Shown in pieces: positions 7,572 through 61,400 of a stretch of DNA of 64,000 bases. Origin of the DNA: Cyanophora paradoxa CCMP329 (taxonomy: Eukaryota; Plantae; Glaucophyta); NCBI GenBank assembly GCA_004431415.1, contig QPMI01000295.1:5239-69238 (forward strand). Reading direction: 5' to 3'. The notes below the pieces were generated by a model that worked only from the letters and a program-made list of their open reading frames with translations, was not told the DNA's origin and did no database searches. Each line of letters starts with the position of its first letter. Position 1 is the first letter of the stretch. A program made the translations under genes and the position numbers.

Positions 7572-7632
7572 GTATGGCTGCCACGGCAGCCTTGCTTACA
7601 GCAAGCTAAGCACAACATGTCTTGTCATGAAG
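7572..7632 (-). repeat. Split direct repeat B, terminal copy (3' end of element 1)
   Basis: 61 bp (gtatggctgcc...gtcatgaag) identical to 14720-14780 and 16759-16819. Confidence 0.92.
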
Positions 7633-8040
7633 TGAAGGTCTAGATTCGCGCTTGCCAAAGCCGCGAAGCTAAGATCATGACTCGCTCGCTCACAAGAAGG
7701 GCAAGCTGCAACTGCGCTCGAGGACATCAGCTAGCGCACGCTGCAGAGTGAGTCTTGCGGACGTAGAATGATTGAACATTAGTGATCAATTGTTGATCAA
7801 TTATTCATCAAAAGATATCAATGGTTGGCACTAACAATAGCTTAAAGATGACTGAAGGCATAGTAAACAATGGGCATTGCTAACACACATTGAAAGCGGC
7901 TAAGCAAAGCCGCTCGAGCGGCTAGGGAACAAGCCGCTCAGCAAGTTACACAGCTTGCCCTCGCTTGTGAGCGAGGGAGACAAGCGCCGACAGCACAGCA
8001 AAGGCGCACAACTGCGAAGCAAGACTCTAAGACTAGACAA

Positions 8041-8725
8041 TCAACTACTGCGCCGAGTACGCGCGAGTTGCTGCCGACATGACTGCAGCGAAGCTGACGG
8101 GCCAGCGTAACGAGCACCAGGCCTAGCCATGAGCGCAGCCAAGGGCGGGCGCTCAGCAGAATCGATATAGCGTCGGTAGACCGCTGACAACAAGGACCAG
8201 CGACCAACCGCTTGAACAAGCTCTTCAGGCACGCCCGCCGCAGCCAGAGCAGTAGCTCCACCGCGACGCAAGCCATGAGGTGTGATACCAGTGGCGTCCA
8301 AGCCCGCCGCGTCAAATGCGAACCGGAGAACATAGGCCACGGTCTGAGCTGACAGAGAACGAGCTGCGTCCCGAAGCTGCCCAAAAAGAGGTGCGCCCGG
8401 ATCCGCGAGCGCTACAGTCCGCAAGTAGGTTCGAAACCAGAACACCGGACAGATGACCGACTCTGGGACAGCGCCCAAGACAACTTGCGCGCCTTGGCGA
8501 CGACGATCGGTCTTGGAACCGGCAATGAAGAGCACGACGCGATCCGCGCGGATGGACACATCTTGCCGCCGGAGTGCCACGATTTCGCCACGCCGCAACA
8601 GGCCAAAGAAACCGGTAAGCAACATCACAAGGGCGCGAAGGAGCTTGTTTGAGGGGGAACGAGCGTAGGTACGAGCAATCGCCTCCAGGTGGACGGACGT
8701 GACCAATGCAGATTGCTTTGCTGGT
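8041..8725 (-). pseudogene. Tyrosine recombinase, catalytic C-terminal part (gene interrupted by insertion)
   Basis: LLRRGE (R), SKTD (K), HGLRRGGA (HxxR), GRWS (W), YRRYI (Y). Confidence 0.92.
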
Positions 8726-9068
8726 TGTGCCGCCCACTTTCCGACTCCCAGCTAGCCCTGGTCGTCGGCTCTAAGCCGGCAGCTTGCCTTGCCTTGTACC
8801 CTTTGTAGCCTGCTATTCCTGGTGCCACGTTGTTGCCAACTGGCCCGCTTATTTTAGCCCTGGGCCCTCGCTTGCCCTGCGCGGCGCTCGCTTGCTGTCT
8901 GTCGACGTCCTTGTTCTCTTGTTCTCTCTGTCTTACGCTGGCTCTGCGCCTGCTGTGTACGTAATGGCACCCGCTTGCCGCCGCCCTACGGTGCCGTACG
9001 GGCCTGTCCCTCTCTGCTTGGGGCGCCTCTGGGCCTAGCCAACTGCTTAGCGCATCCCGCCCAGCGCA
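8726..9068 (+). repeat. LTR-like direct repeat, 5' copy (TG...CA, 343 bp)
   Basis: Apparently identical to 11655-11997; followed directly by PBS-like TGGGGGCT. Confidence 0.88.
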
Positions 9069-11654
9069 TGGGGGCTGCTGCGTTGGGCTTCGACTTTTTA
9101 GCTCGTATGCCTGGGGACGAACGCTGCGCTCTTGCCCGAACCCCTGGACAAGCACGCCATCGTTTGCCTTGGCTTGCGCGTACGGCCTCCACTTTCTTGT
9201 AGTGGGAAGCGCCTATGCGGCAGAGCTTAGCAATACGAACCGCATGGTTCATGCCTTTCCACCCGCCACTGCGCCTTTCTTGCTTACGGACCTGGCGCAC
9301 CACTCTTTCTGTAGTGGGAAGCGTCCGCCAACCCGTCTATTGAGCCGCATGCGCTCACAGTCATCTAAACGTGCCGTGGCTGCGCTCAAGAGCAAATGCT
9401 GATGCAGCCCGCGCGCATGTCGAGTGAAACTGTATTGCATTGTATCGGGGACGACACCACAACGTACTACTAAATGTATTGTATGTGGAGCAACACCCTC
9501 TACATCTACACACGTCGTCATTACGATCGAATTGCGTGTTGACGCCGATCGAATGATGATCTTGTTGTCGTCGTGGCATGTCGTTTCTTCCCTGGTCCAC
9601 GTGCAGTGAGACGTATGATGATTAAAGCTGTCTGACTGAGTATTCTTCACAAACATACCTTCTTTTCGTCGTCGTCTTGTTTTGTCGAGTTGCCCGCATG
9701 CTCGTGACATGCCAGGCTCGCAAGGCAGCTATGAAGCGCCAGTCAACCAATCTTTGCTCTCTGCAGAAAGTACAGAGTCAGCCCGCCAAGACGTGAATGC
9801 CCTGGGATAACATGGCCCCAGTCCGCGCCCGAGGTCTCACCTACGACGGCTGCGATGGCACCTCCGGCTAGCCCGAGGCACGCTCAATGGTGGCGAGTGT
9901 ATCTGAAGAACGCATGGAGTCAAACCGCTGCGACGTGAAAGCCCCTGGGATAACAAGGCCCAGTACGCGCCCGAGGTCTCACCTACGACGGCTGCAGTGG
10001 CGCCTGCGGACCTCCCGAGGCACGCTCAGCGGCGGCGAGTGGCATCCCTCGTGAGGATCACTCCACTTGACTCCACCCTGCATCCAGAGGACGTGCGGCT
10101 CCGCGTCTCTCTCGGCTCTGCGGGTTGCGTACGCGTCAGTGGAAGCCGGCGCAGCTCCACTTGACAGCGATCTCTATGCGAGGAAGCGCATCTATCTGTT
10201 GTCAAGCCTACCGGGCGCACTGTCGCACCTAGTCGGCAGACAAGATGCCAAGACCTTGCCCTGGCTCCGACGACGTAGCTGCCCTTCTCCGGGACGTCCA
10301 GCTCGTCAAGCCAGATGTCAGTCGCTTCACGCACATCTCAAGCGTGTGCGAACTGTCGTTTTCTTCCTGTCGTGGGCGTTTGATCAGCGACCGAGGCCTG
10401 TTCAGCGGGCGGAGGTCTGACCGAGGCCTGTCCGGCGGGCGGAGGTCAACAGAAGCGTAAAGGATGCGCTCTGGAACGTCCTACGACGACGTGAGCAGCC
10501 ATAGCTAAAGTTGGACGGCGGACAGCGGACCTGTCTGTTGAGGAGCGTCAGCAAGCAGCACTGGGTGATGCCCCGCGACCAGTCTTCACGTTCGCGCGTC
10601 GACTGCGTCGGCCCGTCGGGTGATTCCCGTGCATCGGTTGAACCTGGCAGCTGGGTGATGCCAGCTGGACGCCAGCGCTGTTTCGGTCTGCTTAGCTGTG
10701 GGTGATTCCACGCTGACCAAGCCAGCACGCACCGGCGCTCTAGTCCGGGTGATTCCGACCAAGCCTCCGCTTGCGACTCTCCGCTGCTGAGAGGTCCATA
10801 CGTCTTGCCTACGACTATCACGCGAGCACCGATGATCATTCCGGGCCGCGCTGATGCTGTCTCCTGTCCCGCGATGGTGGCCTGCCTAAGCCCCGGCTAC
10901 GCGCTGCATCTGCGTACGCTGGCGGACTCGATGGCTGTCCCGTCCGATCGTGGAGGATCCTTGGCGATGGGTCTGTATGATGCAACCAGTGGCCTGCTGC
11001 TGCTGCGGAGCCTGACCCCGTACGACTGGCTCGCCGCCTCTACTCTTCATGGCTTGCCTGCTCTACGCGTACGCGGCTGCACACTCTACTGTGCTGACCG
11101 ATCGCCCCGCCTTGTGACTCCGCCGGCCGAGTCACTTGGCAACGCAATGCGGCAAGCTGCGCCGAGCTTGGCCCGCAACGCGTACTCTGCCGCTGCGGCT
11201 CTGCTGATCGAGCCTGCGGTCCTACACTCCTACATTCTACATCAAGTACCTTCTACACTGTGGAACTTTCGACCCGGCGCCGCCGCAGCCCGGCGGCTTG
11301 CGGCGCGGCGCCGGTTTCGAATTCGAGCTTAGTGCTAGCGCTAGCACTCGTTTTCCCCTCCGGCGGGATTTAGAGGGTTTGCCCCGGTTGGCTGGCGGCG
11401 CTCCGCGCGCTCTGGCGTCAGGTCGTGGGTCCCTCACCCAACTTCCCTTGTTGGGCCCAGTTCCTCATACTGGTGCCGACGGCCTGATGGATTTTAATTT
11501 GCCCCTCTGGCCCGCCCGCTGTGGCGCCGAGGACGGCTTTCTGTGCAGGGACGGTAGCCGGCTTTTGGCTCGTAGTCCGTTCAGCCTCGCCTACGCAGCT
11601 TTAGTTCAGCCTTTAGCTCGTAGCGCCGAGGACGGCTTTTTGTAGCGGGAAGCG

Positions 11655-11997
11655 TGTGCCGCCCACTTTCCGACTCCCAGCTAGCCCTGGTCGTCGGCTC
11701 TAAGCCGGCAGCTTGCCTTGCCTTGTACCCTTTGTAGCCTGCTATTCCTGGTGCCACGTTGTTGCCAACTGGCCCGCTTATTTTAGCCCTGGGCCCTCGC
11801 TTGCCCTGCGCGGCGCTCGCTTGCTGTCTGTCGACGTCCTTGTTCTCTTGTTCTCTCTGTCTTACGCTGGCTCTGCGCCTGCTGTGTACGTAATGGCACC
11901 CGCTTGCCGCCGCCCTACGGTGCCGTACGGGCCTGTCCCTCTCTGCTTGGGGCGCCTCTGGGCCTAGCCAACTGCTTAGCGCATCCCGCCCAGCGCA
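11655..11997 (+). repeat. LTR-like direct repeat, 3' copy
   Basis: Apparently identical to 8726-9068; preceded by purine-rich agcgggaagcg (PPT-like). Confidence 0.88.
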
Positions 11998-12053
11998 AGC
12001 CGGCTTAGAGCCGACGACCAGGGCTAGCTGGGAGTCGGAAAGTGGGCGGCACA

Positions 12054-12374
12054 TGGTTTTCCACAAAGTCGGGCGATTCCTTGCAATGTTTGCAGCACAA
12101 GGGGGTGAGCAAATGCAGTAGTAGGCAACATCCTCTGCCTTGTCTGATGTAGCAGAGCAGAGTGACACTGGTCAATTGCTGAGAGACCGTACTCTTCATC
12201 AGCAAGAGCCACCAGCAGTGTTGCGACGCCAGAAGCTGTTGGTGGCCAGGCTGGAATGCAGTGAACCGCGCAATGGCCTTCATAGAGGACGACCCAGCGG
12301 GCGTAGAGGCTTTGGGTTCGCTCGCTCACAGAGTTTGTTCTGTAGAAAGTGACCCGGTTGAGCAGATCAGCCAT
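12054..12374 (-). pseudogene. Tyrosine recombinase, N-terminal part
   Basis: MADLL...SERTQSLYARW...HPLVLQTLQGIARLCGKP. Removing 8726-12053 plus one TGGT copy restores in-frame ARLCGKPAKQSALVTSVHL. Confidence 0.88.
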
Positions 12375-12527
12375 ACGAGCACCTGCATCACCAGTCAAGG
12401 GTATGTCAGACTACATTTCTTCTTCTTCTTTTTAAAGCCCCCACTCAAGCTTTCTATCCCTGTTGCTGGACAAAGTAAGCTGAGCAGAGATGAGCAGGAG
12501 TTGAATTCTGCAGCAAGAGCCTTCAAT

Positions 12528-14491
12528 CTACTCCCACGACGCATAAAGAGCAACAAGAATCCAGGAAGGTAACTGTGCCGAGCGAGGCCCGCGATAGCAC
12601 ACGTCATATGCTGGGCCGAGCACCATTGCAGGTGCACGCAAGGCAAGCTGCAACTGTGGCCACCATGGAGCTGAGGGCCACTGAGGGACAATAAAAACTG
12701 CCGAGGCCCTACACTGGCGGACATGTGACACAAGGTGCAAGAGGAAATTTGGGTCTGGAAAGACGTAATTACGAGCACCACGCCAGGTTGCTGTAAAGCA
12801 ATCATATCCTTCAGCATGTCGATCATTCAAATCAATGGAAAAGTATCGATTTAGGTGAGTGTTGGCTGATGAGGCCATACGATCAATATCAAAAGGTCCA
12901 AATGTCCGACTGACCATGGCAAAATATCCAGGTTTCAAAGAGTAGTCGGCGGGGTAAAAGTAGCGACTCAAAGCATCGGACCACTCATTGTCAACACCAG
13001 GAATGTGTTCTGCTTCAATGCTGATGCAGTTGAGCAGAGCAATATCCCAAATTGCTGCTGCAACTCGGCAAAGGTATTCATGTCTTCCGCCACCATTGTT
13101 GATGTAGGCCACAGTCACTGTGTTGTCCGAGCGAACTAAGATGTTCTGATTGCGCAATAAACCTTGATAGTGCTGCATAGCGCGAAGCACTGCCATTAAC
13201 TCGCGCCACGACGAAATTTGCTGAGCTTCTTCTTGGTTCCACAGGCACTGGAATGGGGCAGGCTCAAGCTCCCAAGCCACAGGTTGAGCATCACCAATTC
13301 GGGTAGTGATCCAGGCTCCTGCACCAACATGGCTTGCATCCGTAGTCAACACAAGGAGCCTTTCAGGCCGAATAGGGCAGCGGCCATTGTATCGGTGGAT
13401 GTTGGCCAGCCACCACTCAAGTTCCCGACGAGTCTCATTGGTGAGCTCCACTGGATGATTCCAATGCCATTCTCTTGCCACAACATTGATGTATCGAAAG
13501 AGGGACCTGGTCTTGATGCGAGCTGGAGCCAAGCCCGTGCCATGGACACAAGGGTGCCGGCGACCTTGGCCATTTCACGTGCAGATGCTGATTTCTTTTT
13601 CTTCAGAAGCCCTTTGATCAAAGCAAGCAGACGACCAAGCTTGTCTTGGGGTACTTCAAACAACATGCGGGCGGAGTCCACTATGAAGCCCAAGAAAGCC
13701 ACCGACTGTGCTGGGGTGAGCTCAGATTTGCTGTTGACCACAAGCTTGAGGGCAGCAAATGTTTTGAGGACGAAATCCCGCAATTCACAGGCCTTCTCGT
13801 AGGTTGGAGCAGCAAACCACCAGTCGTCAACATAGTTCACCACGAAGATGCCAAAGCGGCGGAAGTAGTTGACCACTTGTCGCATGATCTTGACGAATGC
13901 AAACGGTGAGTGCTTGAGGCCGAAGGGCAAAACTGTGTACACATAGAATTTGCTGTCAAACTCAAAGCCCATGTTCCGCCAGTCTTGCGGGGAGACTGGC
14001 ACGTGGTGGTATCCAGATTCAAGGTCAATAGTGAACATGTACCAGCCTTGGCGCAGCATGGCTGCAACATGCTCAAGAGTCTCATACTTGAAGGGGATGT
14101 CCGGAAGGCCTTTATTGGTAGGCCGGCCATCCCAGATGAGCCGCAACTTGGATCCAGTCTTCTTGGGCACCACAGACAGTGAGCAGACAATGTTCACTTG
14201 AGCTTCTTCAACTTCTCTGATCGCTCCCGTGCGCAAAAGCTTCTGAATTTCGGTTCTCACAAAGTCCTGATGGTCCACAGCCGCAGACTTGTGGTTGGCC
14301 CGGCGCTCTGCTGGCAGCCGCCTCGCTCCTGACAAAGGGAAACCACGCAAGATCCAGTTGAGCACGACATCATTGGCTCCAATCGCTCTCCACTGTTGGA
14401 CTGCAGCTTGAATGCAGGATGCAACAAAGCCTCCTGCAAAGTGAGGTGAGGCCTTGCATTGGCAGACATGCCCAATTATCGCGGTGCCCAT
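12528..14491 (-). CDS. DIRS-type Pol: reverse transcriptase, RNase H, DNA adenine methyltransferase-like domain (one 1-nt frameshift at about 13535)
   Basis: KLRLIWDGR, IDLESGYHHV, LPFGL, YVDD, FLGF; TTDAS, SWRELMAV, SDN, HIPGVDNEWSDALSR; IDRMAS..N, VPQWPSAPWW. Comparison with family 2 (ARGLAPAR) shows one G missing in a homopolymer. Confidence 0.92.
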
Positions 14492-14559
14492 CTAGCACTG
14501 CTACAGCTGATGGTCCATGCAGCCGCTGGCTTGAAGATGGTGACACGCGAACGGGAAGA

Positions 14560-14719
14560 AGCTTAGAGGCCTTGGCTGCGAAGCAAGACTGAGGCTTGTA
14601 CCCAGGGGCGCACTTATAACTTGTAAGTGCGCCCCTTGTACATATGTGCGTAAGCAAGGCTGCCTTTATTTGGCAGCCATACACTGCCCTATGCTACGCT
14701 GACGCTCACATAGGTTCGA
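14560..14719 (-). repeat. Split direct repeat A, internal copy upstream of pol
   Basis: Identical, except for one C in a homopolymer, to 16598-16758 and 18641-18801. Confidence 0.92.
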
Positions 14720-14780
14720 GTATGGCTGCCACGGCAGCCTTGCTTACAGCAAGCTAAGCACAACATGTCTTGTCATGAAG
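14720..14780 (-). repeat. Split direct repeat B, internal copy
   Basis: Identical to 7572-7632; abuts repeat A. Confidence 0.92.
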
Positions 14781-15506
14781 AATATAAGAGTGAGCGTGTC
14801 AATGTGCTTGTTGGTTCAAGTCTTGAGCTCACATGCACACACAGTGCCACAATGCACCCACAGTGCCACAACACATTTGCACAGGCATGGACTTTCTGGA
14901 TGAATGCGCCAACCTGCGATATCAGCGGGAACAGTTGGCATCATGGAATCTTCGTACCCTTGTGTACTCCTCACCTGCAAAATGCACTAGGTTAATTTCA
15001 GAGCGCCCAGTATGCGATAGCGACACACGGGAAGGCCGGAGGGGGCCAGGAGCTCGACAGCCATCAGCACTCCTGACCTGTGCTGGAAACAGGTCAGTTG
15101 CCGGGAGTCAGCTGGGGCTCTGCCAGGTTGGAGTCATCCAGACGGCAATATATGCCACTAGCATTGAAAAGAAAAGTAGACTACACTCACAGTCACACTT
15201 CACAGTGTTAACACATGCAAATGCACACAGGACCAATGCATAAAGCCACAGCACGCCGGCGCCACCACGGCTGGTAATGACTATGCCGCACCCGGCCACA
15301 ATGCCGCACCCGGCCACACCATCACATGAAATGGAAGCATAATACATGTATTGCATGTTTAGGGAAGCATACACGCACACTCTAGATCTTCTGAAGACTG
15401 CACTTGCATATGCTAGCAATACTTATGCTTGCAAGAACACACCGAAACACTAGTATCTAGCGAAATGCGAAACGAAAACTGCGCGTCCACACAAGGGCGC
15501 GCACGT

Positions 15507-16591
15507 CTACTTGGGGGGGTCGCGCCAGCCGGGGCGCGGCTCGTTCGGGCAATCCTTCACGACATGCCCGGGCTTGTTGCAGCGGAAACACATCCGCTGT
15601 TGCGCTGCGACGGCGGGCGATCGCGGCCCTGGTGCTGGGGCCGCGGGTTGGCGTGCTGCACATACGGGCGCCCGCCGGCGGCCTCCGGGCCAGCAATGTT
15701 GAGCGCGTGCGCCAGCGCCGCAGCCGTGCCCCGATACTCCTCTGGCACACCTGCCAGCCGCTCGGCAAGCTTGTCGCCGCCCTTGTCGCGAATGTCGATC
15801 CGCTTCCGGAGCTCGTCGAGGATTTTGAGGCTCTGCTTTACGTGATCGTAGCACGCAGTGCACGAAGAGCATCTCTTGAGCTGAAACTTAAGCTGCGATA
15901 GCTGCAGGGCAAGCTCACGAAGCCACGGGTTTTTGAGCTGCATAGCCTCATGGTTGTCTTTCTGCTGCTCGCCGAGCTGCTGCTGCTGCTGCTCTTGAAG
16001 CTTGATGACCGCGCTATCTATCCCACGCTGAAGTAGCTCAGCCCACGCTGGCGGAAGCGCACCCGCTGCCGGTTTGGTCGACGTTGGGGCAGTCGAGTTG
16101 CCAGCGGGTACAGCATAAGGGCCTTGAAGGTGACGGGTGAAGCCGGTTGACGGGCCAGCCGCGCCGGATCACTTGCGCCAAGTTCGGAAAGTTGCGCGCA
16201 GCCACTTGCTCTTCCTCGTCGTAGGCGCCACCGAACTGCTCACGCTGTGCCAGTCTAACGGCAACGTCGTCCTCAGGTTCATCTTCTGGGTCGGACTGCT
16301 GCTGGTCCGGATCCGGCGACACGGCTTTCTCCTTGCCTTTGCGAGATCGCGTCGGCGGAGGTGCAGGCTGCTCCTCCTCCGCACTGTCGTTGGCCGGAGC
16401 TTGAAGACGAGATGACGACCTCCGGGCCTGGGGCGCGGGGTCGTCGCCGTCTTGGGTTTGGCCGACTTGCGCGCACCAGTGGCCGTTGACTTGCGTTTCT
16501 GCGCCGCCTCGGCACAGGCGACGAGCAGAATGATGGTCAAGACGACTACGAACAGAGGGGCCCACGATGGGCTCCTCCGCGAGCGAGCCAT
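15507..16591 (-). pseudogene. Gag-like ORF, duplicated copy with apparent frameshifts
   Basis: Near-identical to 17546-18634, with four single-base losses in C/G runs and one substitution that I could see; could be sequencing error. Confidence 0.8.
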
Positions 16592-16597
16592 GACCTC

Positions 16598-16819
16598 AGC
16601 TTAGAGGCCTTGGCTGCGAAGCAAGACTGAGGCTTGTACCCCAGGGGCGCACTTATAACTTGTAAGTGCGCCCCTTGTACATATGTGCGTAAGCAAGGCT
16701 GCCTTTATTTGGCAGCCATACACTGCCCTATGCTACGCTGACGCTCACATAGGTTCGAGTATGGCTGCCACGGCAGCCTTGCTTACAGCAAGCTAAGCAC
16801 AACATGTCTTGTCATGAAG
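16598..16819 (-). repeat. Second internal B|A junction (A 16598-16758, B 16759-16819)
   Basis: Same sequence as 14560-14780. Confidence 0.92.
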
Positions 16820-17545
16820 AATATAAGAGTGAGCGTGTCAATGTGCTTGTTGGTTCAAGTCTTGAGCTCACATGCACACACAGTGCCACAATGCACCCAC
16901 AGTGCCACAACACATTTGCACAGGCATGGACTTTCTGGATGAATGCGCCAACCTGCGATATCAGCGGGAACAGTTGGCATCATGGAATCTTCGTACCCTT
17001 GTGTACTCCTCACCTGCAAAATGCACTAGGTTAATTTCAGAGCGCCCAGTATGCGATAGCGACACACGGGAAGGCCGGAGGGGGCCAGGAGCTCGACAGC
17101 CATCAGCACTCCTGACCTGTGCTGGAAACAGGTCAGTTGCCGGGAGTCAGCTGGGGCTCTGCCAGGTTGGAGTCATCCAGACGGCAATATATGCCACTAG
17201 CATTGAAAAGAAAAGTAGACTACACTCACAGTCACACTTCACAGTGTTAACACATGCAAATGCACACAGGACCAATGCATAAAGCCACAGCACGCCGGCG
17301 CCACCACGGCTGGTAATGACTATGCCGCACCCGGCCACAATGCCGCACCCGGCCACACCATCACATGAAATGGAAGCATAATACATGTATTGCATGTTTA
17401 GGGAAGCATACACGCACACTCTAGATCTTCTGAAGACTGCACTTGCATATGCTAGCAATACTTATGCTTGCAAGAACACACCGAAACACTAGTATCTAGC
17501 GAAATGCGAAACGAAAACTGCGCGTCCACACAAGGGCGCGCACGT

Positions 17546-18634
17546 CTACTTGGGGGGGTCGCGCCAGCCGGGGCGCGGCTCGTTCGGGCAATCCTTCACG
17601 ACATGCCCGGGCTTGTTGCAGCGGAAACACATCCCGCTGTTGCGCTGCGACGGCGGGCGATCGCGGCCCTGGTGCTGGGGCCGCGGGTTGGCGTGCTGCA
17701 CATACGGGCGCCCGCCGGCGGCCTCCGGGCCAGCAATGTTGAGCGCGTGCGCCAGCGCCGCAGCCGTGCCCCGATACTCCTCTGGCACACCTGCCAGCCG
17801 CTCGGCAAGCTTGTCGCCGCCCTTGTTGCGAATGTCGATCCGCTTCCGGAGCTCGTCGAGGATTTTGAGGCTCTGCTTTACGTGATCGTAGCACGCAGTG
17901 CACGAAGAGCATCTCTTGAGCTGAAACTTAAGCTGCGATAGCTGCAGGGCAAGCTCACGAAGCCACGGGTTTTTGAGCTGCATAGCCTCATGGTTGTCTT
18001 TCTGCTGCTCGCCGAGCTGCTGCTGCTGCTGCTCTTGAAGCTTGATGACCGCGCTATCTATCCCACGCTGAAGTAGCTCAGCCCACGCTGGCGGAAGCGC
18101 ACCCGCTGCCGGTTTGGTCGACGTTGGGGCAGTCGAGTTGCCAGCGGGTACAGCATAAGGGCCTTGAAGGTGACGGGTGAAGCCGGTTGACGGGCCAGCC
18201 GCGCCCGGATCCACTTGCGCCAAGTTCGGAAAGTTGCGCGCAGCCACTTGCTCTTCCTCGTCGTAGGCGCCACCGAACTGCTCACGCTGTGCCAGTCTAA
18301 CGGCAACGTCGTCCTCAGGTTCATCTTCTGGGTCGGACTGCTGCTGGTCCGGATCCGGCGACACGGCTTTCTCCTTGCCTTTGCGAGATCGCGTCGGCGG
18401 AGGTGCAGGCTGCTCCTCCTCCGCACTGTCGTTGGCCGGAGCTTGAAGACGAGATGACGACCTCCGGGCCTGGGGCGCGGGGGTCGTCGCCGTCTTGGGT
18501 TTGGCCGACTTGCGCGCACCAGTGGCCGTTGACTTGCGTTTCTGCGCCGCCTCGGCACAGGCGACGAGCAGAATGATGGTCAAGACGACTACGAACAGAG
18601 GGGCCCACGATGGGCTCCTCCGCGAGCGAGCCAT
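17546..18634 (-). CDS. gag: Gag-like protein with N-terminal hydrophobic signal/anchor, coiled coil and C-terminal CCHC zinc knuckle (362 aa)
   Basis: CFRCNKPGHVVKDC knuckle; first ORF of the element; homologous to 54146-55282. Confidence 0.85.
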   Translation of the reverse strand: MARSRRSPSWAPLFVVVLTIILLVACAEAAQKRKSTATGARKSAKPKTATTPAPQARRSSSRLQAPANDSAEEEQPAPPPTRSRKGKEKAVSPDPDQQQSDPEDEPEDDVAVRLAQREQFGGAYDEEEQVAARNFPNLAQVDPGAAGPSTGFTRHLQGPYAVPAGNSTAPTSTKPAAGALPPAWAELLQRGIDSAVIKLQEQQQQQLGEQQKDNHEAMQLKNPWLRELALQLSQLKFQLKRCSSCTACYDHVKQSLKILDELRKRIDIRNKGGDKLAERLAGVPEEYRGTAAALAHALNIAGPEAAGGRPYVQHANPRPQHQGRDRPPSQRNSGMCFRCNKPGHVVKDCPNEPRPGWRDPPK

Positions 18635-18640
18635 GACCTC

Positions 18641-18801
18641 AGCTTAGAGGCCTTGGCTGCGAAGCAAGACTGAGGCTTGTACCCCAGGGGCGCACTTATA
18701 ACTTGTAAGTGCGCCCCTTGTACATATGTGCGTAAGCAAGGCTGCCTTTATTTGGCAGCCATACACTGCCCTATGCTACGCTGACGCTCACATAGGTTCG
18801 A
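18641..18801 (-). repeat. Split direct repeat A, terminal copy (5' end of element 1)
   Basis: Identity to the internal copies stops exactly at 18801. Confidence 0.92.
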
Positions 18802-19309
18802 CTAAAGAGAAAGTATTACACATACATTGCGTTGCCTCTCGTCATGTAGAAACGGGGCAACGCAGCGAATCGAGCACGGGGGGCCTGGGCGCCCCCACAG
18901 CCCTCTCCTCATCTACTGCTGCTCAGCAGCATCTAGCAGCATCCAGCAGCATCTATCATAGTAGTGTAGCTAGATGCCGCGATAGGTAAAACAGTAGCGA
19001 ATAGCTATCTCAAAGTGTTATACATGTGGTGCGAGCACGGGCCAGGGTCGGGTCCGGCTCGGCGAGGCATGAAAAGGGGTGTCTAGGACGAATAATGATG
19101 GAGGGCCGGAAAGCAACGCGCTTAACTAGCGCGGGGGTGCCACGGCGATCTAATTGCGCCGCCGTGGAATACTCTGATGGAGATACGGACGGGAAAGGCC
19201 CGACCTGGGGCGCGCGCCCGGCCCCGGGCCCTGGGTGAATAAGGCTGCATAGAAGAGCGCTCAACTAGCGCTGGACCGGAGGTGACGGTGCCCCCGGGGG
19301 TCCGGGGCC

Positions 19310-53988: not shown

Positions 53989-54018
53989 CAGCGCTTGGGT
54001 CTTTTGCGGCGCTTTTCC

Positions 54019-54147
54019 TATTGAATATGCGAGCGAACGCGTAGCATATGACTTTGTATGCCTGCCACTCCGTAAGCAGCCTTGATTCTATACAATGATT
54101 GTTAGGGGTACAACCTTCAGTCTTCTTTCGCGCGAAGCAGTGAAGAT
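54019..54147 (+). repeat. Repeat A, 5' copy (family 2)
   Basis: 129 bp, one mismatch versus 56105-56233. Confidence 0.92.
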
Positions 54148-55282
54148 GTGTCGCGTGGCTCGTCGTGGGAGGGGCCCTAGCTGGGCCCCTCTGGTGGTCA
54201 CACTTGTTCTCGTCGTCGTCGTTTTCAGCCTCTTGGCGGCCTGCGCGGAGGCGGGGTCGAAAAAGAAGGGCAAGTCTTCCGCAACGGGCTCCCGCAAGAC
54301 AGCCCGTCCGCGGCCGACCGCATCCGCCCAGCCACGAGCTCGCCGTTCCACGCGTGTGACCGAGGCGGCGGACTCCGGCGGCGAGGACAACGGTTCGGCG
54401 CCTACTCCAACGCCAAGTGGCCGTCAGTCAACCAGCAACAAGCGCAAGGCGCCAGCCGCCCCGGCAGTCGAAAACCGCACCAGTGACGGCGTTCCGGATC
54501 CGGAGCCATTTTCCGAGGACGAGGAGGATGTGATTGCCGGCGTGCAGCGTCGTGAGCAGTTCGGCGGTGCAGCCACACGAGAGGAAGCTCTTGCCGCACA
54601 GATGTTCCCGAATCTCGAGATGCCGGTTCCCGACCAGCCAGGACCCAGCCGGCACACTCGGCACCGCCACGGCCCGGTTCCCGTCGTCAATGCCACAACA
54701 GCCCCTGCCGGTGAGCTTAATGAGTACATTAAGAAGCAGATTCAGCAAGGCATAGACCGAGGGGTAGAGTCCATCCGTGAGCACCAGCATCAAATCGCTC
54801 AGGAGCAGCAGCGCGAACAGCATGAAGCAATGCAGCTTAAGAATACCTGGCTTCGGGAGTTTGCGTTCCAGCTGATACAGCTGCGTTTCCAGCTCAAGGG
54901 GCTCCTCTCGTGTGTCGCCTGTGCAGCAACCCTCAAAGCGTCTTTGAAGCAGCTCGAGGAGCTTAAGAAGAAGATAGATATCCGCGACAAAGGCGGCGAT
55001 AAGACAGCCGAGGCGCTTGCAGCTGTGCCGGAGGAGCACCGCGCACAGACCGCGTCGATGGCGTACGCGCTTCGTGTGGCTGGCGTCGGCGCCGGTAATT
55101 CGTATGCACCAGCTGAGCGCCAGCCGTCTAGCTATCGGCCCCCGCAGCGGCAGCGTGTCGAACGCGAGCAGGCGCCCACCGCCCAGCGGAATGGCGGCGC
55201 TTGCTTTAGGTGCAACCAGCACGGCCACCATGTGAAGGATTGCACCAACCCGCCGCGCCCGGATTGGCGCGAGAAGAAGTAG
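54146..55282 (+). CDS. gag: Gag-like protein with N-terminal hydrophobic signal/anchor and CCHC knuckle
   Basis: CFRCNQHGHHVKDC; shares HEAMQLKN.WLRE, IDIRDKGGDK and REQFGGA with family 1 Gag. Confidence 0.85.
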   Translation: MCRVARRGRGPSWAPLVVTLVLVVVVFSLLAACAEAGSKKKGKSSATGSRKTARPRPTASAQPRARRSTRVTEAADSGGEDNGSAPTPTPSGRQSTSNKRKAPAAPAVENRTSDGVPDPEPFSEDEEDVIAGVQRREQFGGAATREEALAAQMFPNLEMPVPDQPGPSRHTRHRHGPVPVVNATTAPAGELNEYIKKQIQQGIDRGVESIREHQHQIAQEQQREQHEAMQLKNTWLREFAFQLIQLRFQLKGLLSCVACAATLKASLKQLEELKKKIDIRDKGGDKTAEALAAVPEEHRAQTASMAYALRVAGVGAGNSYAPAERQPSSYRPPQRQRVEREQAPTAQRNGGACFRCNQHGHHVKDCTNPPRPDWREKK

Positions 55283-56044
55283 GCGGCTTCCTGTGCCCAG
55301 CCTTTCGGGCGCAGCTGTAGAGTGCTAGGTTTTTTTCGTTTTCGTGTGGCCCCCGACTTGGCATGTGCATGTGCTCGTAGCTGTGCTGTGCTGTGTGTGT
55401 GCCATGAAGGAATAAATCTGGGCTTTCTTATGTGTGTTTGAGCTTGCATTGCATTCGTGGTGATGGGTCTGTGGTGAACACTAGCTTGGCAATTGCAATG
55501 TGCATGACCTTGTGATCGTTTCAAATTTGCCATAGTCTACAAGGCCTTGTAACTACGAATTTTGCATAAGCTTTGAGCATCACAACTTTGTGGGCCATAA
55601 GTGCCACCTGGATGACTCCAACCTGGTGCGAGCCCCAGCCAATCCCCAACAGCCTGACCTCTTCTCGTCCCAGGTCACATCAGGCTGCGGTCGAGTTGCC
55701 GAGTTCCTGGCCAGCAACGGCCATCTCGTGTGTCGCCATCGCGCGCTGGGTGCTCAGATCTAATCATTTGGTATCGCAGGTGTGGAGGAAATCATCTCTT
55801 GGTATTCAGGTGTGTCTCCCAATTTTCTATTCTGTTCCGCAGGTTGGCGCATTCATCCAGAGGTGTGCATGCTGGACAAGTTTTGAAGCATTCAAGAGAA
55901 CAAGTTGTGTACTTGCATGAGTCCATATGTGTGTGCTGTGCATGCTGTGATGTGCCTTCATTCAAGAACTTCGCGCATCCACCGTGGAGGTGAACGTCAG
56001 GTGTTGTGACAAGTTCGTACCTGTGACACGCTCACTATTAAAGA

Positions 56045-56233
56045 CTTCATGATCGGACTTGGCTTAGAATTGCTTAGAAGCAAGGCTGCTTGTGGCAGAC
56101 ATACTATTGAATATGCGAGCGAACGCGTAGCATATGACTTTGTATGCCTGCCACTCCGTAAGCAGCCTTGATTCTATACAATGATTGTTAGGGGTACAAC
56201 CTTCAGTCTTCTTTCGAGCGAAGCAGTGAAGAT
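56045..56233 (+). repeat. Internal B|A junction of family 2 (B about 56045-56104 by homology; A 56105-56233)
   Basis: B aligns with family 1 B (cttcatga...gcaaggctgc..gtggcag.catac); A repeats 54019-54147. Confidence 0.82.
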
Positions 56234-56417
56234 TCCTCACGTTTGCGTGTCACAGCCGCCCTCCAGCGTACCAGCTCCAGCTCCAACTCAGCTCCAGCTG
56301 CAGCTGGAGCCAGACTCAACTGCAGCTCAGCCTGTCAGCTTGTGTCGTTGATAAGATGTGGCGACAATTTAAGGCCTCAAGCCCAATTCCTGTGCGCTTG
56401 TGACTTTTAGCCACCAG

Positions 56418-58332
56418 GTTCTTTTGTGGCGTCCTGCATCCGTGAGGCCTGGTCCCAGTGGAAGGAGATTGGTGCCAACTATGTGGTGTTGTCATGGATA
56501 CGTGACGGTTTCCCGCTGACTGGGGCCCGCAACCTGCCACCGGAGCATCGGCATATATATAATCACAAGTCTGCAGCCGAGGATCACAGGGATTTTGTGC
56601 AGACGGAAATTCAGAAACTCTTGCGCACCGGGGCCATTCGTGAAGTCCAACAGCACGAAGTGAACATTGTGTGCTCCTTGTCCGTGGTCCCAAAGAAGAC
56701 CGGCTCCAAACTTCGTCTGATCTGGGACGGTCGACCCACCAATCAAGGTCTACCAGATCGGAAATTTCGATTTGAGACTCTTGAGCATGTGGCGGCAATG
56801 CTCCGTCAAGGGTGGTACATGTTCACCATTGACCTAGAGTCTGGCTATCACCACGTGCCAGTGGCGGAGCAAGATTGGCGCAACATGGGCTTCTCTTTTG
56901 ACAGCAAGTATTATGTCTATACGGTTTTGCCCTTCGGCCTTCGACACTCGCCTTTTGCATTCGTCAAAATTATGCGGCAAGTGGTCAACTATTTCAGGAA
57001 ACTGGGCATCTTTGTTGTCAACTATGTGGACGATTGGTGGTTTGCGGCTCCTACTTTCTTGGAGGCCTGTAAGCTGCGAGACTTTAATTTGTGCTGGCTA
57101 CATTTAAACGGCTTAAGTTGGTGGTCAACAGCAAGTCAGCGCTTACCCCATCTCAGTCAGTGGCTTTCCTGGGCTTCATTGTGGACTCGGCTCGCATGTT
57201 GTTTGAGGTTCCTGGCGACAAGCTGAGCAGACTACTTCAGCTGATCCGCAAGCTCCTACGCAAACACTCAGCGTCTGCCCGTGATATGGCAAAGGTGGCA
57301 GGCACCTTGGTATCCATGGCTCGAGGGCTTGCTCCAGCTCGCATCCAGACTTGTGCTTTGTTCCGTTACATCAATGTGGCGGCCCGGGAGTGGCACTGGA
57401 ACCATCCTGTGCAGATTACTGATGAGACTCGGTCTGAGCTCCAGTGGTGGCTGGCCAACATACACAAGTACAATGGGCGCTGTCCGATTCGTCCTGAGCG
57501 GCTACTTGTGCTCACCACTGATGCTAGTCATCTTGGTGCTGGAGCTTGGATTACCACGCGGATCGGTGATGTACCTCCTGTGCTCTGTGCTCCTGGCCCG
57601 CCTCCATTCCAGTGCCTGTGGAACAGTGAGGAATCTCAGCGAATCTCTTCTTGGAGGGAGCTGCAAGCTGTGCTACGGGCTATGCAACACTATCAGTCTG
57701 TGCTTCAGAATCAGAACATCTTGGTTCGATCGGACAACTCTGTGACAGTTGCTTATATCAACAATGGTGGCGGTCGTCATGCTTATTTGACGGAGATCGC
57801 TCGTCAGATTTGGGACATTGCCTTGACAGGTTGTGTTAGCATTGAGGCCGAGCATATTCCAGGCATAGATAACGAGTGGTCAGATGCTCTTAGCAGGTAC
57901 TTTTTTCCAGCAGACTACTCCCTTAAGCCGGTATATTTTGCTATGGTCAGCCGCATTTTAGGCCCTTTTGACGTGGACAGGATGGCCACAGCTGCCAATG
58001 CCCACCTTCCTCGATATTTCTCTGTAGATTTGCGTGATGCCCGTGCCGAAGGGCATGATTGCTTCACTGTGTCATGGCTTGGTGCTCGCAACTACGTGTT
58101 TCCGGATCCCAATGTGATCCTGCATGTGGTCTCTCATGTTAGACAGTGCAGAGCAGCTGCAGTCTTTGTCGTACCTGATTGGCCCTCCGCCCCATGGTGG
58201 CCCCAGCTTGAGCAGGCAAGGCAGGCTCCTGTGTTGTACTTGGGGCCTGCTTCAACCGTCTGCTTGCCAGGCCCTCGTTCTCCTGTTCTTCCGTCTTGGT
58301 CTCTTGTGGCTATTTCCGCAGCCTGGCAGTAG
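56418..58332 (+). pseudogene. DIRS-type Pol (RT-RH-MT) with a 5-bp frameshifting insertion at 57086-57090
   Basis: YVDD, TTDAS, SDN, HIPGIDNEWSDALSR, VDRMAT, PDWPSAPWW; gacttt[aattt]gtg disrupts RDFVL. Confidence 0.9.
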
Positions 58333-58433
58333 CACACAAATTAGCCATCTGCAAATATAACGATTTCGCATCCGGGGCCCCTTCTTAGTCCTCGTACGCA
58401 GCTTGCCTGACATTGCATTTGCTGCAGATGTGC

Positions 58434-61400
58434 GGCGTCGGCTGGGTTCTTGTGCTCTTTCGCCCCCAGAGAGCTTGCGCAAAGCTTGGAAAAGCTCTCA
58501 AATGAATACTGTACGGATGGGCATGCGTGAGGATGCGAGGGCGCGCGGAAAGATGGGCAGGTTTGTCAAGGATCGAATTCTTGCATGGGGTCGGCTGGGT
58601 CCTCGCGGCCCGGCGCATCTGCAAAGCGCGCGGAAGGATTTGTCTACATCTCAAATGCTTATACTATTGTTCCGCGCATGCGCCGCGGCGTGGGCGCGCG
58701 GAAAGATGTCCGGGCCTGTGCAGGATCGAATTTTCCGAAGTTCGCCGCCGGGTGCCTTCCTGCACTGTTCCGGCTACGAAAAGCGGATCGCTGGAGCGCG
58801 CAGGCCGTGCTTTGTCTATGCGCGTGAGTACGCATCGATTGCGCGCGTCCCGGGACCGGGCGGGACCGGCTGGGTCAAAGTTTCCCCCGACTCTTCGCAC
58901 TGCAGTGTCGGCGGCGCCCGAAATTGAGCTTGCAGCGGTGCGCGTGCCGTCGGCTCTCATTCTGTACCGCTCTGGGGCGTTCCTGGTGCGCTTTCATCGC
59001 GGGACAGGGCGGGACCGGGTCCCACTTTTTGGAGTTCGCGTGACGCCCACGGGAGAGCCGAAATTCGATTTTTCGCGTGACGTCCACGGGAGAGCCGAAA
59101 TTCGATATTCGCGCGACGGCCATGGGAGAGCGGTCTCCCTCGAGAAGCCACGATTGGAATTCCTCGAGACGTCCGGACATGTCGGCGTACAAGTCTGAGA
59201 TTTGATCCATGAGAGAACTCGATGGAAAAATGCGTGACGTCACTGTCAAGGTGTGTGCGTGAATTGATCCACGACGAACACGGGGTACGGACATTACAGA
59301 GAGAGAACAGGAATTTCGATCGCCAGCCCTGGGCCCCTGCGGGTCCCAAACATCGGGCGAAGCCTCAGCCGCCCTCGATCCTCGCGCCCCCCTTGTTCAA
59401 CGCGGCCCGTTGTGGCTGTTGCTGGGTCAGCGGGGGAGGGAGAGGGGAGGGGAGGGCTGCTGAGAGGGAATATTATTGGGCTTGAGAATATTATAATGAG
59501 GGGAGGAGTGGTGCTGCCAATCAGCTGGCCTGGCGGGGGAGGGAGAGGGGAGGGGAGGGCTGCTGCACCGGAATATAATTATGGGGGGAGTTGTCCTGAG
59601 AGGAGATTTCCTGAGAGAATATAATTTTGTAATAAGGGGAATTGCTGCAGCTGAGGGAGAATATAATGAGGGGAGGAGTGGTGCTGCCAATCAGCTAGCT
59701 GTAGTTGAGGTCGAGGCTTTGAGGAAATTGCGAGGAAATTGGTGAGGGGAGGGGCGAGGTTCTCGTGGCCAGGCGTATGCGCAGAGCTTATAAATCGCTT
59801 AAACAGATTCTCGGATGCATGCAGGATCGATGTGCAGGCTGCAGAGACACGGGCGCGCGGAAATATGTGCAGGTCTGTCCAGGATCGAAAATTTGGCGTC
59901 GGCTGGATTCTCGTTCTCTTTCGCGGCCACAGAGCTTGCGAAAGGCTTTAAGAACCTCTCAAATGAATACTGTAGCGATGGGCATGGATGCGGACGCGAG
60001 GGCGCGCGGAAAGATGCACAGGTCCGTCCAGGATCGAATTTTTTGGGACGGCTGGGTCCTCGCGGCCCGGCGCATTTAGAGACCGTGCGAAAGTCTTCTT
60101 CTAAATCTCAAATGCTTATTCTATCTTTCCGCGCATGCGCCGCGGCGTCGGCGCGCGGAAAGTTGCCCGGGGCTGTGCAGGATCGAAGTTTTGCCGTCGG
60201 GCACCTTCTCGCGCTGTTCCGGCTCCGAAAAGCGGATATCTGGAGTGCGTAGGCCCTGCTATGTCTATGCGCGCCAGTACGCATCGAATGCGCGCGTCGT
60301 GGGACCGGACGGAACCGGCAGGATCGAAATTTCGGCCGACTCTCTGGACTGGAGCGTCGATGGCGGCCGAAATCGAGCTTGCCGTGATGCGCGCGCTCTT
60401 GGCTGTCATTCTGACCGTTGTGGAGTCTCTCTGGCGCGCTTTCGTCGCGGAACCGGGTCCCACTTTTTGGGATTTCGCGATCGAACCCCGGGGTATAAAT
60501 ACCGGAATTGATCCGTGAGGGAAATTTGATTTTCGCACGATGCCTACGGGAGAGCGATCGTCTTACATGAATTCTAGGGGAGCTATGATTCCGAAAATAG
60601 ATCAATGGAGCCGTGTAACTCTGTGTCACGTCGGAGACCGGTCGCCTTCATTGCGGAGGTTGCGAATCTGGACGCTCGGACCAATCGGACTCGAGTGGAA
60701 AAAAATAAATGGAAACGTTCACCATCGACCTACGGACAAGCCCTGGGCCCCTGCGGGTCCCAAACATCGGGCGAAGCCTCGGCCGCCCACCTCGCGTCCG
60801 CCTTGATCATCGCGGCCCGTCGTGGGTGTTGCTGGGTCGGCGGGGCAGGGAGAGGGAGGGCTGCTGAGAGGGAATATAATTATGGGAGGAGTTGTCCTGA
60901 GAGGAGTTAATTTAACGTTGTACTCAGAGAATATAATTATGCCTAAGGGAAATAACATTAATTGCTGTGGCTGATCGAGAGAGAATATAATATTAATGAG
61001 AAGAGGAGTGGTGCAAGGGGATGGGGCGAGGTTCTAGCGGCCAGGCGCATGCGCAGAGCTTAGGAATCGCTTAAACAGAGTCTAGAATGCAAACAGGATC
61101 GATGTTAAGGGCTGTGGAGGCGAGGGCGCGCGGAAATATGTGTAGGGCTGTCCAGTATCGCAAATTTGGCTTCGGCTGGGTTCTCGTGCTCTTTCGCGCC
61201 CACAGAGCTTGCGGAAGGCTTTAAAAAGCTCTCAAATGAATACTGTAGCGATGGGCGTGCGTGGGGATGCGACGGCGCGCGGAAAGAAGCGCAGGTCCGT
61301 CCAGGATCGAATTTTCGGGGACGGCTGGGTCCTCGCGGCCCGGCGCAATTAGAGATCGTGCGAAAGTCTTCTTCTACATCTCAAATGCTTATACTATTGA

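Follow-up and report, generated by a model that had tools for sequence, protein, structure and literature searches.

Two diverged retrotransposon families within the 64-kb window, the whole stretch of 64,000 nt that was analysed, have an internal B|A repeat junction between gag and pol, and the boundaries of the two junctions are homologous. The initial annotation had proposed both this position and the cassette order ([A-gag-B][A-gag-B][A-pol-YR-B] in element 1, [A-gag-B][A-pol...] in element 2), and both were confirmed, the order by self-comparison. On the layout and domains read from its sequence, element 1 (7572-18801, minus strand) is a PAT-like retrotransposon, with split direct repeats and of the DIRS order. 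It appears to be a layout variant of a known retrotransposon type, the new part being the gag|pol junction. Element 1 is probably a recent and by now defective copy of a multi-copy PAT-like family of Cyanophora paradoxa with the fixed order A1-gag-B1|A2-RT/RH/MT-YR-B2, which gained a gag block by recombination or template switching.

Self-comparison gave the coding order A(161)-gag-B(61) / A-gag-B / A-RT/RH/MT-YR-B for element 1, all parts of which lie on the minus strand. The 5' terminal repeat A (18641-18801, 161 nt) matches 16598-16758 and 14560-14719 and is followed by gag copy 1 (17546-18634), an intact 362-aa ORF with a CCHC zinc knuckle (zf-CCHC, 1.3e-5). Internal B|A junction 1 (16598-16819; B 16819-16759, A 16758-16598) separates gag copy 1 from gag copy 2, and the interior of the second gag cassette (14781-16597) equals copy 1 apart from four one-base homopolymer deletions and one substitution. 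Junction 2 (14560-14780; B 14780-14720, A 14719-14560) stands between gag and pol. The three B copies were 100% identical, the A copies were one homopolymer base apart, and the A-gag-B unit of 2,039-2,043 bp was repeated at 99.7%.

The pol region (12528-14491) comprises RT at 14491-13346 and RNase H with a putative Dam-like MT region at 13532-12528. A single-base deletion at 13533 is the sole break between its two ORFs; an extra C after 13533 was present in contigs of all four runs, and pol of the related contig L010 is one 662-aa ORF. RH-MT continues directly into the tyrosine recombinase (YR) with no repeat between them. The recombinase is divided into an N-terminal part (12058-12398) and a C-terminal catalytic part (8041-8721; HxxR...Y, Phage_integrase 9.1e-13) by a 3,328-bp TIR element (8726-12053) that is foreign to the retrotransposon. 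This insertion is bounded by perfect TIRs of 55 nt, contains a 343-bp internal direct repeat and is flanked by the target duplication TGGT at 8722-8725 and 12054-12057; its ORFs had no Pfam match. Downstream of the YR only the terminal B was found (7572-7632, 61 nt), with no A copy. Subtracting 3,332 bp for the insertion and about 2,040 bp for the extra gag unit from 11,230 bp leaves approximately 5,858 bp. The flanks of element 1, the only complete copy, read ...CTCTTTAG|A (5' flank from 18802) and B|ACTTCAGA... and showed no target-site duplication.

Pfam searches of element 1 returned RVT_1 (4.7e-19), RT_RNaseH (3e-5), Phage_integrase (9e-13) and the CCHC knuckle in gag, zf-CCHC being found in the gag proteins of both elements, and no ORF tested matched the rve or protease families. 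A Dam-like methyltransferase (MT) domain behind RNase H distinguishes the DIRS1/PAT branch from Ngaro and VIPER; the match of element 1 to it was weak (E 0.0036; 17.4 bits, under the 28.1 cutoff), and no Dam match was returned by Pfam for element 2 or P0165; the MT region of element 1 aligned end to end with relatives carrying PF05869. As in the DIRS order, RT/RNase H is thus accompanied by a tyrosine recombinase, without DDE integrase, aspartic protease or target-site duplication; as in the PAT group, the repeats are split direct repeats (A1...B1A2...B2) rather than ITRs with an ICR. The repeats are 161 or 130 nt (A) and 61 or 59 nt (B) long, and both elements have the internal B|A junction. 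The zinc finger in Gag, which is a trait of Pat1-like elements as opposed to TOC and kangaroo, is present. Element 1 has neither the MT|YR junction of nematode Pat1-like elements and kangaroo nor the Ngaro and echinoderm Pat1 layout, with adjoining B1-A2-B2 downstream of the YR. Its gag was 95% identical to Cyanophora paradoxa EukProt gag models, and gag searches matched the C. paradoxa cluster only; pol searches returned no EukProt models.

Element 2 lies on the plus strand. Its 5' terminal A (54018-54147, 130 nt) is 99.2% identical to 56104-56233, and its gag (54146-55282), which contains a CCHC knuckle, shares 47% amino-acid identity with element 1 gag. The internal B|A junction (56045-56233; B 56045-56103, A 56104-56233) is followed by pol with RT, RNase H and the MT region (56426-58433), which is about 73% identical to element 1 pol at the nucleotide level and is truncated at 58433/58434 by a satellite whose units repeat about every 1.2 kb. 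The order is therefore A-gag-B | A-pol..., and its B|A boundary (CATAC|T...) and the one in element 1 are homologous. Between the elements, B is 75% and A 60% identical, while within each element A1 matches A2 and B1 matches B2; such concerted evolution of A and B would be expected if the termini are re-templated in every cycle. In element 1, 14650-14747 was predicted to fold as a 98-nt hairpin enclosing the B|A boundary (DNA fold -35.8 kcal/mol, z -8.6), in which the last 28 nt of B would pair with nt 38-70 of A, and the homologous region of element 2 gave a fold z of -7.5.

Contigs from relatives point indirectly to a gag|pol junction in two further lineages, to judge by where the assembled sequences break, namely at A and B around pol-YR. 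Among the k=31 contigs, the first base lies about 60-80 nt upstream of pol in L006 and L007 (46-50% identity) and in L010 (76% nt). The other end of L006 falls 30 nt inside a B-like CTTCATG... block, and L001 opens at the A motif CGTAGCATA. An apparent 13-aa gag match in L001 was rejected as spurious, as it falls in a region with stop codons and no knuckle. The next relatives, L008 and L009 (35% identity), carry gag-pol-YR together on one contig, and L003 and L005 are of the ITR type (ITRs + ICR) and do not inform on split-repeat layouts. In the glaucophyte clade, the gag|pol junction appears to be kept across families down to about 48% pol identity.

The initial annotation had taken the internal junction of PAT/Ngaro/TOC-type split-direct-repeat elements to lie downstream of the ORFs, near the 3' end. 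As a general premise this was inaccurate, because the junction of nematode Pat1-like elements and kangaroo is MT|YR (Szitenberg et al. 2014, PMC4157794); two-cassette layouts are therefore not new, and what appears undescribed is the gag|pol position alone. Goubert et al. 2022 (PMC8969392) note that "other configurations exist". No description of a gag|pol junction was found in the literature compared, outside of which lie PAT 1992, kangaroo 2002 and Poulter & Butler 2015, and a published description of this layout may exist. Literature searches found no paper linking Cyanophora with DIRS elements, and a 2026 preprint on MT-carrying retrotransposons leaves Cyanophora unmentioned.

The Pat1-like nematode elements (PAT, Panagrellus redivivus) share with element 1 a zinc-knuckle gag, RT-RNase H followed by an MT region (putative in element 1), a sense YR and split repeats A1...B1A2...B2, and their internal junction also lies within the coding part and yields two A...B cassettes (PMC4157794); however, their junction is MT|YR, whereas that of element 1, which comes from a glaucophyte, is gag|pol. 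Kangaroo (Volvox carteri) and TOC3 (Chlamydomonas) likewise come from algae and have split direct repeats and an MT domain in pol (putative in element 1); in kangaroo, too, the internal repeats lie within the element (PMC4157794). In contrast to element 1, with CCHC in gag, a sense YR and a gag|pol junction, in kangaroo the YR is inverted, gag lacks a zinc finger and the junction is MT|YR, and TOC3 has no zinc finger either (PMC4157794). Ngaro, VIPER and the echinoderm-type Pat1 (A1-internal-B1-A2-B2) resemble element 1 in their split direct repeats, YR, lack of target duplication and internal copy of the circle junction, but their B1-A2-B2 stand together behind the YR (PMC4157794, PMC6681497), and Ngaro and VIPER have no MT domain. 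DIRS-1-type elements have a related pol (30-39% identity) and ends complementary to an internal or terminal partner, but carry ITRs and an ICR where the element 1 family has direct split repeats. In LTR retrotransposons, unequal recombination between direct repeats also yields reciprocal deletions and duplications (solo LTRs; LTR-internal-LTR-internal-LTR tandems), as in the gag duplication, but the repeats of element 1 are split junction repeats, and what was duplicated is one gene cassette rather than the entire internal region.

In the split-repeat model of Goodwin and Poulter, a full-length RNA is copied, the internal junction templates the termini and the YR inserts the joined form. Little is understood about split-repeat YR retrotransposons, and the model of their replication is not known to have been put to a direct test. 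Extrapolating from this model, element 1 would be copied as one unit via a full-length RNA, its internal B1|A2 junction would be the template restoring or joining the termini, and the joined form would be inserted by the recombinase without target duplication. The extra gag block is most simply explained by recombination or template switching between repeats. Element 1 contains two copies of the 222-bp B|A junction in direct orientation, so the second A-gag-B block could have been gained either by unequal homologous exchange between B|A junctions or by a reverse transcriptase template switch between A copies followed by run-on. The YR would have been split later by the TIR transposon.

The duplication is known from one long-read assembly; the 24 sequencing runs were covered as contigs (k=31), which do not bridge the 222-bp junction. 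The "frameshift" of gag copy 2 results from single-base homopolymer deletions only, and these look like long-read consensus errors; the deletion in pol at 13533 is of this kind too. Five of them occur in cassette copy 2 (the four in the gag cassette and a fifth in its A repeat, after 14600) and none in copy 1, which hints at a thinly supported consensus. A false tandem duplication, with a true locus of a single gag and the TIR insertion, would account for two copies that differ almost only by these typical errors, and the duplicated consensus of one real copy would also show common private variants. Such an artefact is nevertheless rather unlikely: one substitution (15787 C versus 17827 T) separates the copies, the duplication is cassette-exact and lies inside the contig with unique flanks on both sides, and long-read assemblers tend to collapse young repeats rather than expand them. 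When compared with the family-majority contigs of four runs, the two gag cassettes had in common the private substitutions at 15064/17103 and 15186/17225 and a 6-nt deletion after 15315/17354, indicating that they are sisters. These common variants favour one source for both blocks and speak against a nested or tandem insertion, in which a second element would have entered a resident junction and later been mostly deleted, leaving the second gag block. Tyrosine-recombinase elements may insert into their own junction sequence, and tandem copies have been reported among related elements, for instance TATE (PMC6681497), but this history requires two events with cassette-exact end points and there is neither a second pol-YR nor a scar, so we consider it extremely improbable.

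The initial annotation had further interpreted element 1 as a modular, bipartite element, in which A-gag-B and A-pol-YR-B would each circularise, use its own A for expression and reintegrate at an existing junction. Every B|A junction would then be an equivalent recombinase site, and the extra gag would be a reintegrated gag circle giving an adjustable dosage. Both cassettes do have the same termini, the B end and the arm inside A form inverted repeats with a strong predicted hairpin or palindrome at every junction, and one cassette-exact duplication is present in element 1. However, a single gag duplication is also expected from unequal recombination between the 222-bp direct repeats, and unequal crossing-over yields duplicated and gag-less forms without any recombinase. 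As sisters, the gag cassettes do not look like immigrants. In run X1, Logan DNA contig depth, which is a poor measure of copy number, was 1868 for pol, 1450-1489 for gag, 3290 for an A-only contig and 61 for the unique flank; the corresponding depths in X2 were 862-940, 797-913, 1897 and 23. Compared with the unique flanks, these values suggest that the element 1 family is present in tens of copies. The gag:pol ratio was 0.8-1.0 and A approximately equalled gag plus pol, so there was no excess of gag cassettes; the somewhat higher depth of pol in X1 (about 25% more than gag) would fit separate cassettes. Equivalent circle junctions should make permuted copies common, yet gag comes first and pol second in both elements of the window. 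Public RNA contigs showed antisense RNA and no sense-strand starts, giving no support to separate cassette expression. Circularisation, expression and reintegration of the cassettes as separate mobile units are thus unsupported, and we regard the modular interpretation as quite improbable.

It is similarly doubtful that the B|A hairpin junction acts as a recombinase site wherever it is present, the element's own YR excising, duplicating or losing cassettes. If it did, the gag-duplicated element 1 would be one of its products, gag:pol dosage would vary within the family, and the arrangement would represent a step towards a two-segment retroelement. Under the preferred reading of a fixed A1-gag-B1|A2-RT/RH/MT-YR-B2 order, the gag|pol placement implies that the junction is not tied to one position and adds a third natural "design" to the other two. 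A central junction also creates two long direct repeats bracketing gag, which would make cassette gain or loss easy, as in element 1. If B terminates transcription, the layout would offer a simple means of producing gag message in excess of pol message.

Public RNA contigs over pol contained a multi-intron spliced RNA that is antisense to pol and the junction (12855-14844). The exon pieces had no Pfam match, and in element 2 either GT or AG is missing from five of these nine introns; an antisense gene is not claimed. All nine introns are of the GT..AG type on the plus strand, with joints observed in the RNA-type runs X15 and X16, and lie at 12855-12931, 13074-13244, 13441-13500, 13554-13606, 13716-13802, 13906-13982, 14229-14280, 14446-14522 and 14790-14844. 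That the RNA is mostly antisense and spliced bears on transposon control in Cyanophora.

Self-comparison of the window and reading of the junction sequences gave the repeat map of element 1, a PAT-like retrotransposon on the minus strand. In coding orientation, a 161 nt 5' terminal A repeat (18801-18641) is followed by the first gag copy (18634-17546, 362 aa), a 61 nt B repeat (16819-16759), a second A (16758-16598), a second gag block (16597-14781), a second B (14780-14720), a third A (14719-14560), pol and the tyrosine recombinase (YR) gene (14491-8041), and the 3' terminal B (7632-7572). The order A-gag-B, A-gag-B, A-pol-YR-B proposed in the initial annotation was therefore borne out. All three B copies were identical, and the A copies differed by one base within a C run. 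In Pfam searches, the 362 aa Gag protein ended in a CCHC knuckle, pol matched RVT_1 (4.7e-19) followed by RNase H, with a weak match to a Dam-like methyltransferase (MT) behind RNase H, and the last ORF matched Phage_integrase (9e-13). Without its insertion and the extra gag cassette, element 1 measures approximately 5,858 nt. Its Gag was 95% identical to a 14-member cluster of EukProt gene models from Cyanophora paradoxa, located on many 'tig' contigs. No target-site duplication was shared by the flanks of element 1 (...CTCTTTAG/A...B/ACTTCAGA...). TTTAG lay directly 5' of A in element 1 and in two other genomic copies, and ATAC was shared with the B end in one other copy, as judged from contig flanks; a weak preference for certain targets, or microhomology during integration, may account for such sharing.

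Element 2, on the plus strand, comprises a 5' terminal A (54018-54147), gag with a CCHC motif (54146-55282), B (56045-56103), a second A (56104-56233), and pol, which runs to 58433. A satellite with a period of ~1.2 kb and copies 80-89% alike (58434-64000) begins exactly at the pol break and reaches the window end. The predicted order A-gag-B, A-pol also held. As the initial annotation had claimed, the internal B/A junction separates gag from pol in both elements, and its boundary (…CATAC/T…) occupies a homologous place, making the gag-pol junction a feature of the family. The pol DNAs of the two elements were ~73% identical and the Gag proteins 47% identical. Within each element the two A copies matched, as did the two B copies; between elements, A was only 60% and B 75% identical. 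Such concerted evolution is expected if each replication cycle re-templates the termini from the internal junction. Both Gag proteins open with a hydrophobic stretch (18545-18634, minus strand; 54146-54260, plus strand; …PSWAPLFVVVLTIILLVACAEA…) that resembles a signal peptide or membrane anchor, which is unusual in a Gag.

Judged by structure, with the criteria set out by Szitenberg et al. 2014 (PMC4157794), this family would belong to the PAT group of the DIRS order on account of its predicted domains and its split direct repeats. The assumption that such elements always carry their internal junction behind the ORFs is contradicted by the nematode Pat1-like elements and kangaroo, in which it lies between MT and YR (Szitenberg et al. 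2014, PMC4157794). In Cyanophora paradoxa, it lies between gag and pol. A curation guide notes of split-repeat layouts that 'other configurations exist' (Goubert et al. 2022, PMC8969392). Among the papers accessible to the search, none described an internal junction separating gag from pol, or split-repeat elements of this kind in glaucophytes. The layout is real, family-wide, and apparently new, in an element type that is already known.

Relatives were sought with the element 2 RNase H-MT ORF and the pol protein P0165 as queries, and four close relatives were obtained on short public contigs. Two further lineages of the clade (76% nt; ~48% aa in pol) were present on contigs L010, L006, L007, and L001 from samples ERR10034898, SRR31724264, and ERZ27275054, with two lineages in ERR10034898. 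Contig L010 (76% nt) starts ~60 nt 5' of pol and ends ~100 nt past the pol stop; L006 (46% aa) starts ~80 nt 5' of pol and ends 30 nt inside a homologue of the B start (CTTCACTTCATG...); L007 (50% aa) also starts ~80 nt 5' of pol. These three are k=31 contigs, and their ends would be forced de Bruijn graph breaks if multi-context repeats, A before pol and B after YR, lay there. L001, from a k=141 assembly (46-48% aa), starts at the invariant A motif CGTAGCATA. The contig ends thus point indirectly to the same layout in these lineages. In contrast, the next relatives, L008 and L009 (35% identity), carry gag, pol, and YR on a single unbroken contig in which 3-54 nt separate gag from pol, suggesting that the junction position marks one clade. 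In L003 and L005, which are more distant still, the terminal repeats are inverted.

B ends in 28 nt that repeat A nt 38-70 in inverted orientation; every B/A junction therefore forms a 98 nt hairpin or imperfect palindrome, and any A...B unit has complementary ends. Folded as single-stranded DNA, the element 1 hairpin (14650-14747, minus strand) had a predicted energy of -35.8 kcal/mol (z -8.6), and that of element 2 (56076-56172, plus strand) had a z of -7.5, its sequence differing but its shape being conserved. From these predicted folds, the hairpin could plausibly serve as a recombinase site or an end-pairing device. An 8-11 nt inverted repeat (TGACACGC...GCGTGTCA) also brackets the gag-pol junction in element 1 (~14782-14790 with 14530-14540, minus strand) and element 2 (~56024-56034 with 56245-56255, plus strand); at the gag-gag junction of element 1, it was absent on the gag side. 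Both features are compatible with movement of the element as a unit and with a modular element alike.

In a segmented element, each B/A junction would act as a recombination site and the cassettes would move separately. The depths of public DNA contigs give this no support. In run X1, the word depth was 1868 for pol, 1450-1489 for gag, 3290 for a contig wholly inside A, and 61 for unique flank; the corresponding depths in run X2 were 862-940, 797-913, 1897, and 23. Taken roughly, since contig word depth is not copy number, these values correspond to ~25-40 copies with a gag:pol ratio of 0.8-1.0. Gag cassettes are not in surplus. The depth of A roughly equalled the sum of gag and pol, indicating few A copies outside the two known contexts. 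Moreover, both elements are gag-first, whereas permuted copies should be common if circle junctions were equivalent. We therefore regard separate cassette movement as improbable.

The extra gag cassette, a probable duplication, is explained by ordinary recombination between junction repeats. Contigs from two DNA and two RNA-type runs were placed on 12900-18899, and both cassettes shared private differences from the family-majority sequence: T instead of G at 15064/17103, C instead of A at 15186/17225, and a 6 nt deletion after 15315/17354. These shared differences indicate that the cassettes are sisters and that neither immigrated from another master copy. Unequal exchange between the two 222 bp B/A junctions would produce such sisters, as might, under the split-repeat model, a template switch by reverse transcriptase from the first A to the second, followed by run-on. 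A solo A-pol-YR-B cassette, if one exists, would measure 3,779 nt between the inverted arms of A and B; it would be the deletion product reciprocal to this unequal exchange and would not in itself call for mobile cassettes. A false duplication in the assembly would equally fit sister copies with shared variants, and the uneven indels are a warning sign: copy 2, including its A, differs from copy 1 by one substitution and five one-base homopolymer deletions (one in A), and copy 1 has no residual indels. The 222 bp junction exceeds what k=31 contigs bridge, and we consider the duplication quite likely, though not certain, to be real.

Compared with either the sister copy or every public contig, single bases are missing from homopolymer runs at 13533, 14600, 15593, 16163, 16169, and 16436. 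At 13533, in pol, contigs from all four public runs have an extra C. These indels are likely residual long-read consensus errors rather than decay, and they give intact ORFs of this assembly a frameshifted look. The recombinase gene is also split by a 3,328 bp insertion (8726-12053) with perfect 55 nt terminal inverted repeats (TGTGCCGCCCACTTTCC...) and a 343 bp internal/subterminal direct repeat; the target sequence TGGT is duplicated on either side of it (8722-12057 with the insertion). No recognisable protein was found within its 3,328 bp, and it looks non-autonomous.

Over pol, contigs of the two RNA-type runs (X15 and X16) contained only spliced RNA, with nine introns between 12855 and 14844 on the plus strand and no contig covering the introns. 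Read on the plus strand, these introns begin with GT, end with AG, and show good GTGAG 5' splice sites, indicating that the RNA is antisense to pol. RNA bin depths over pol equalled exactly the exon share of the spliced contig; since sense RNA must contain these stretches, sense pol RNA is below the assembly threshold. The antisense contigs run on through A and B and across gag, to 18670 and past 18899. One X16 contig (1,569 nt, 0 mismatches) joins the outer A to 1.4 kb of unique flank (18700-18899 onward) at the depth of the antisense RNA across gag, which suggests read-out transcription from element 1 into the neighbouring region. In element 2, five of the nine introns lack GT or AG. The exon pieces gave no Pfam matches; on the joined exons, one antisense frame is open for 245 codons over six splice junctions (12769..14028).
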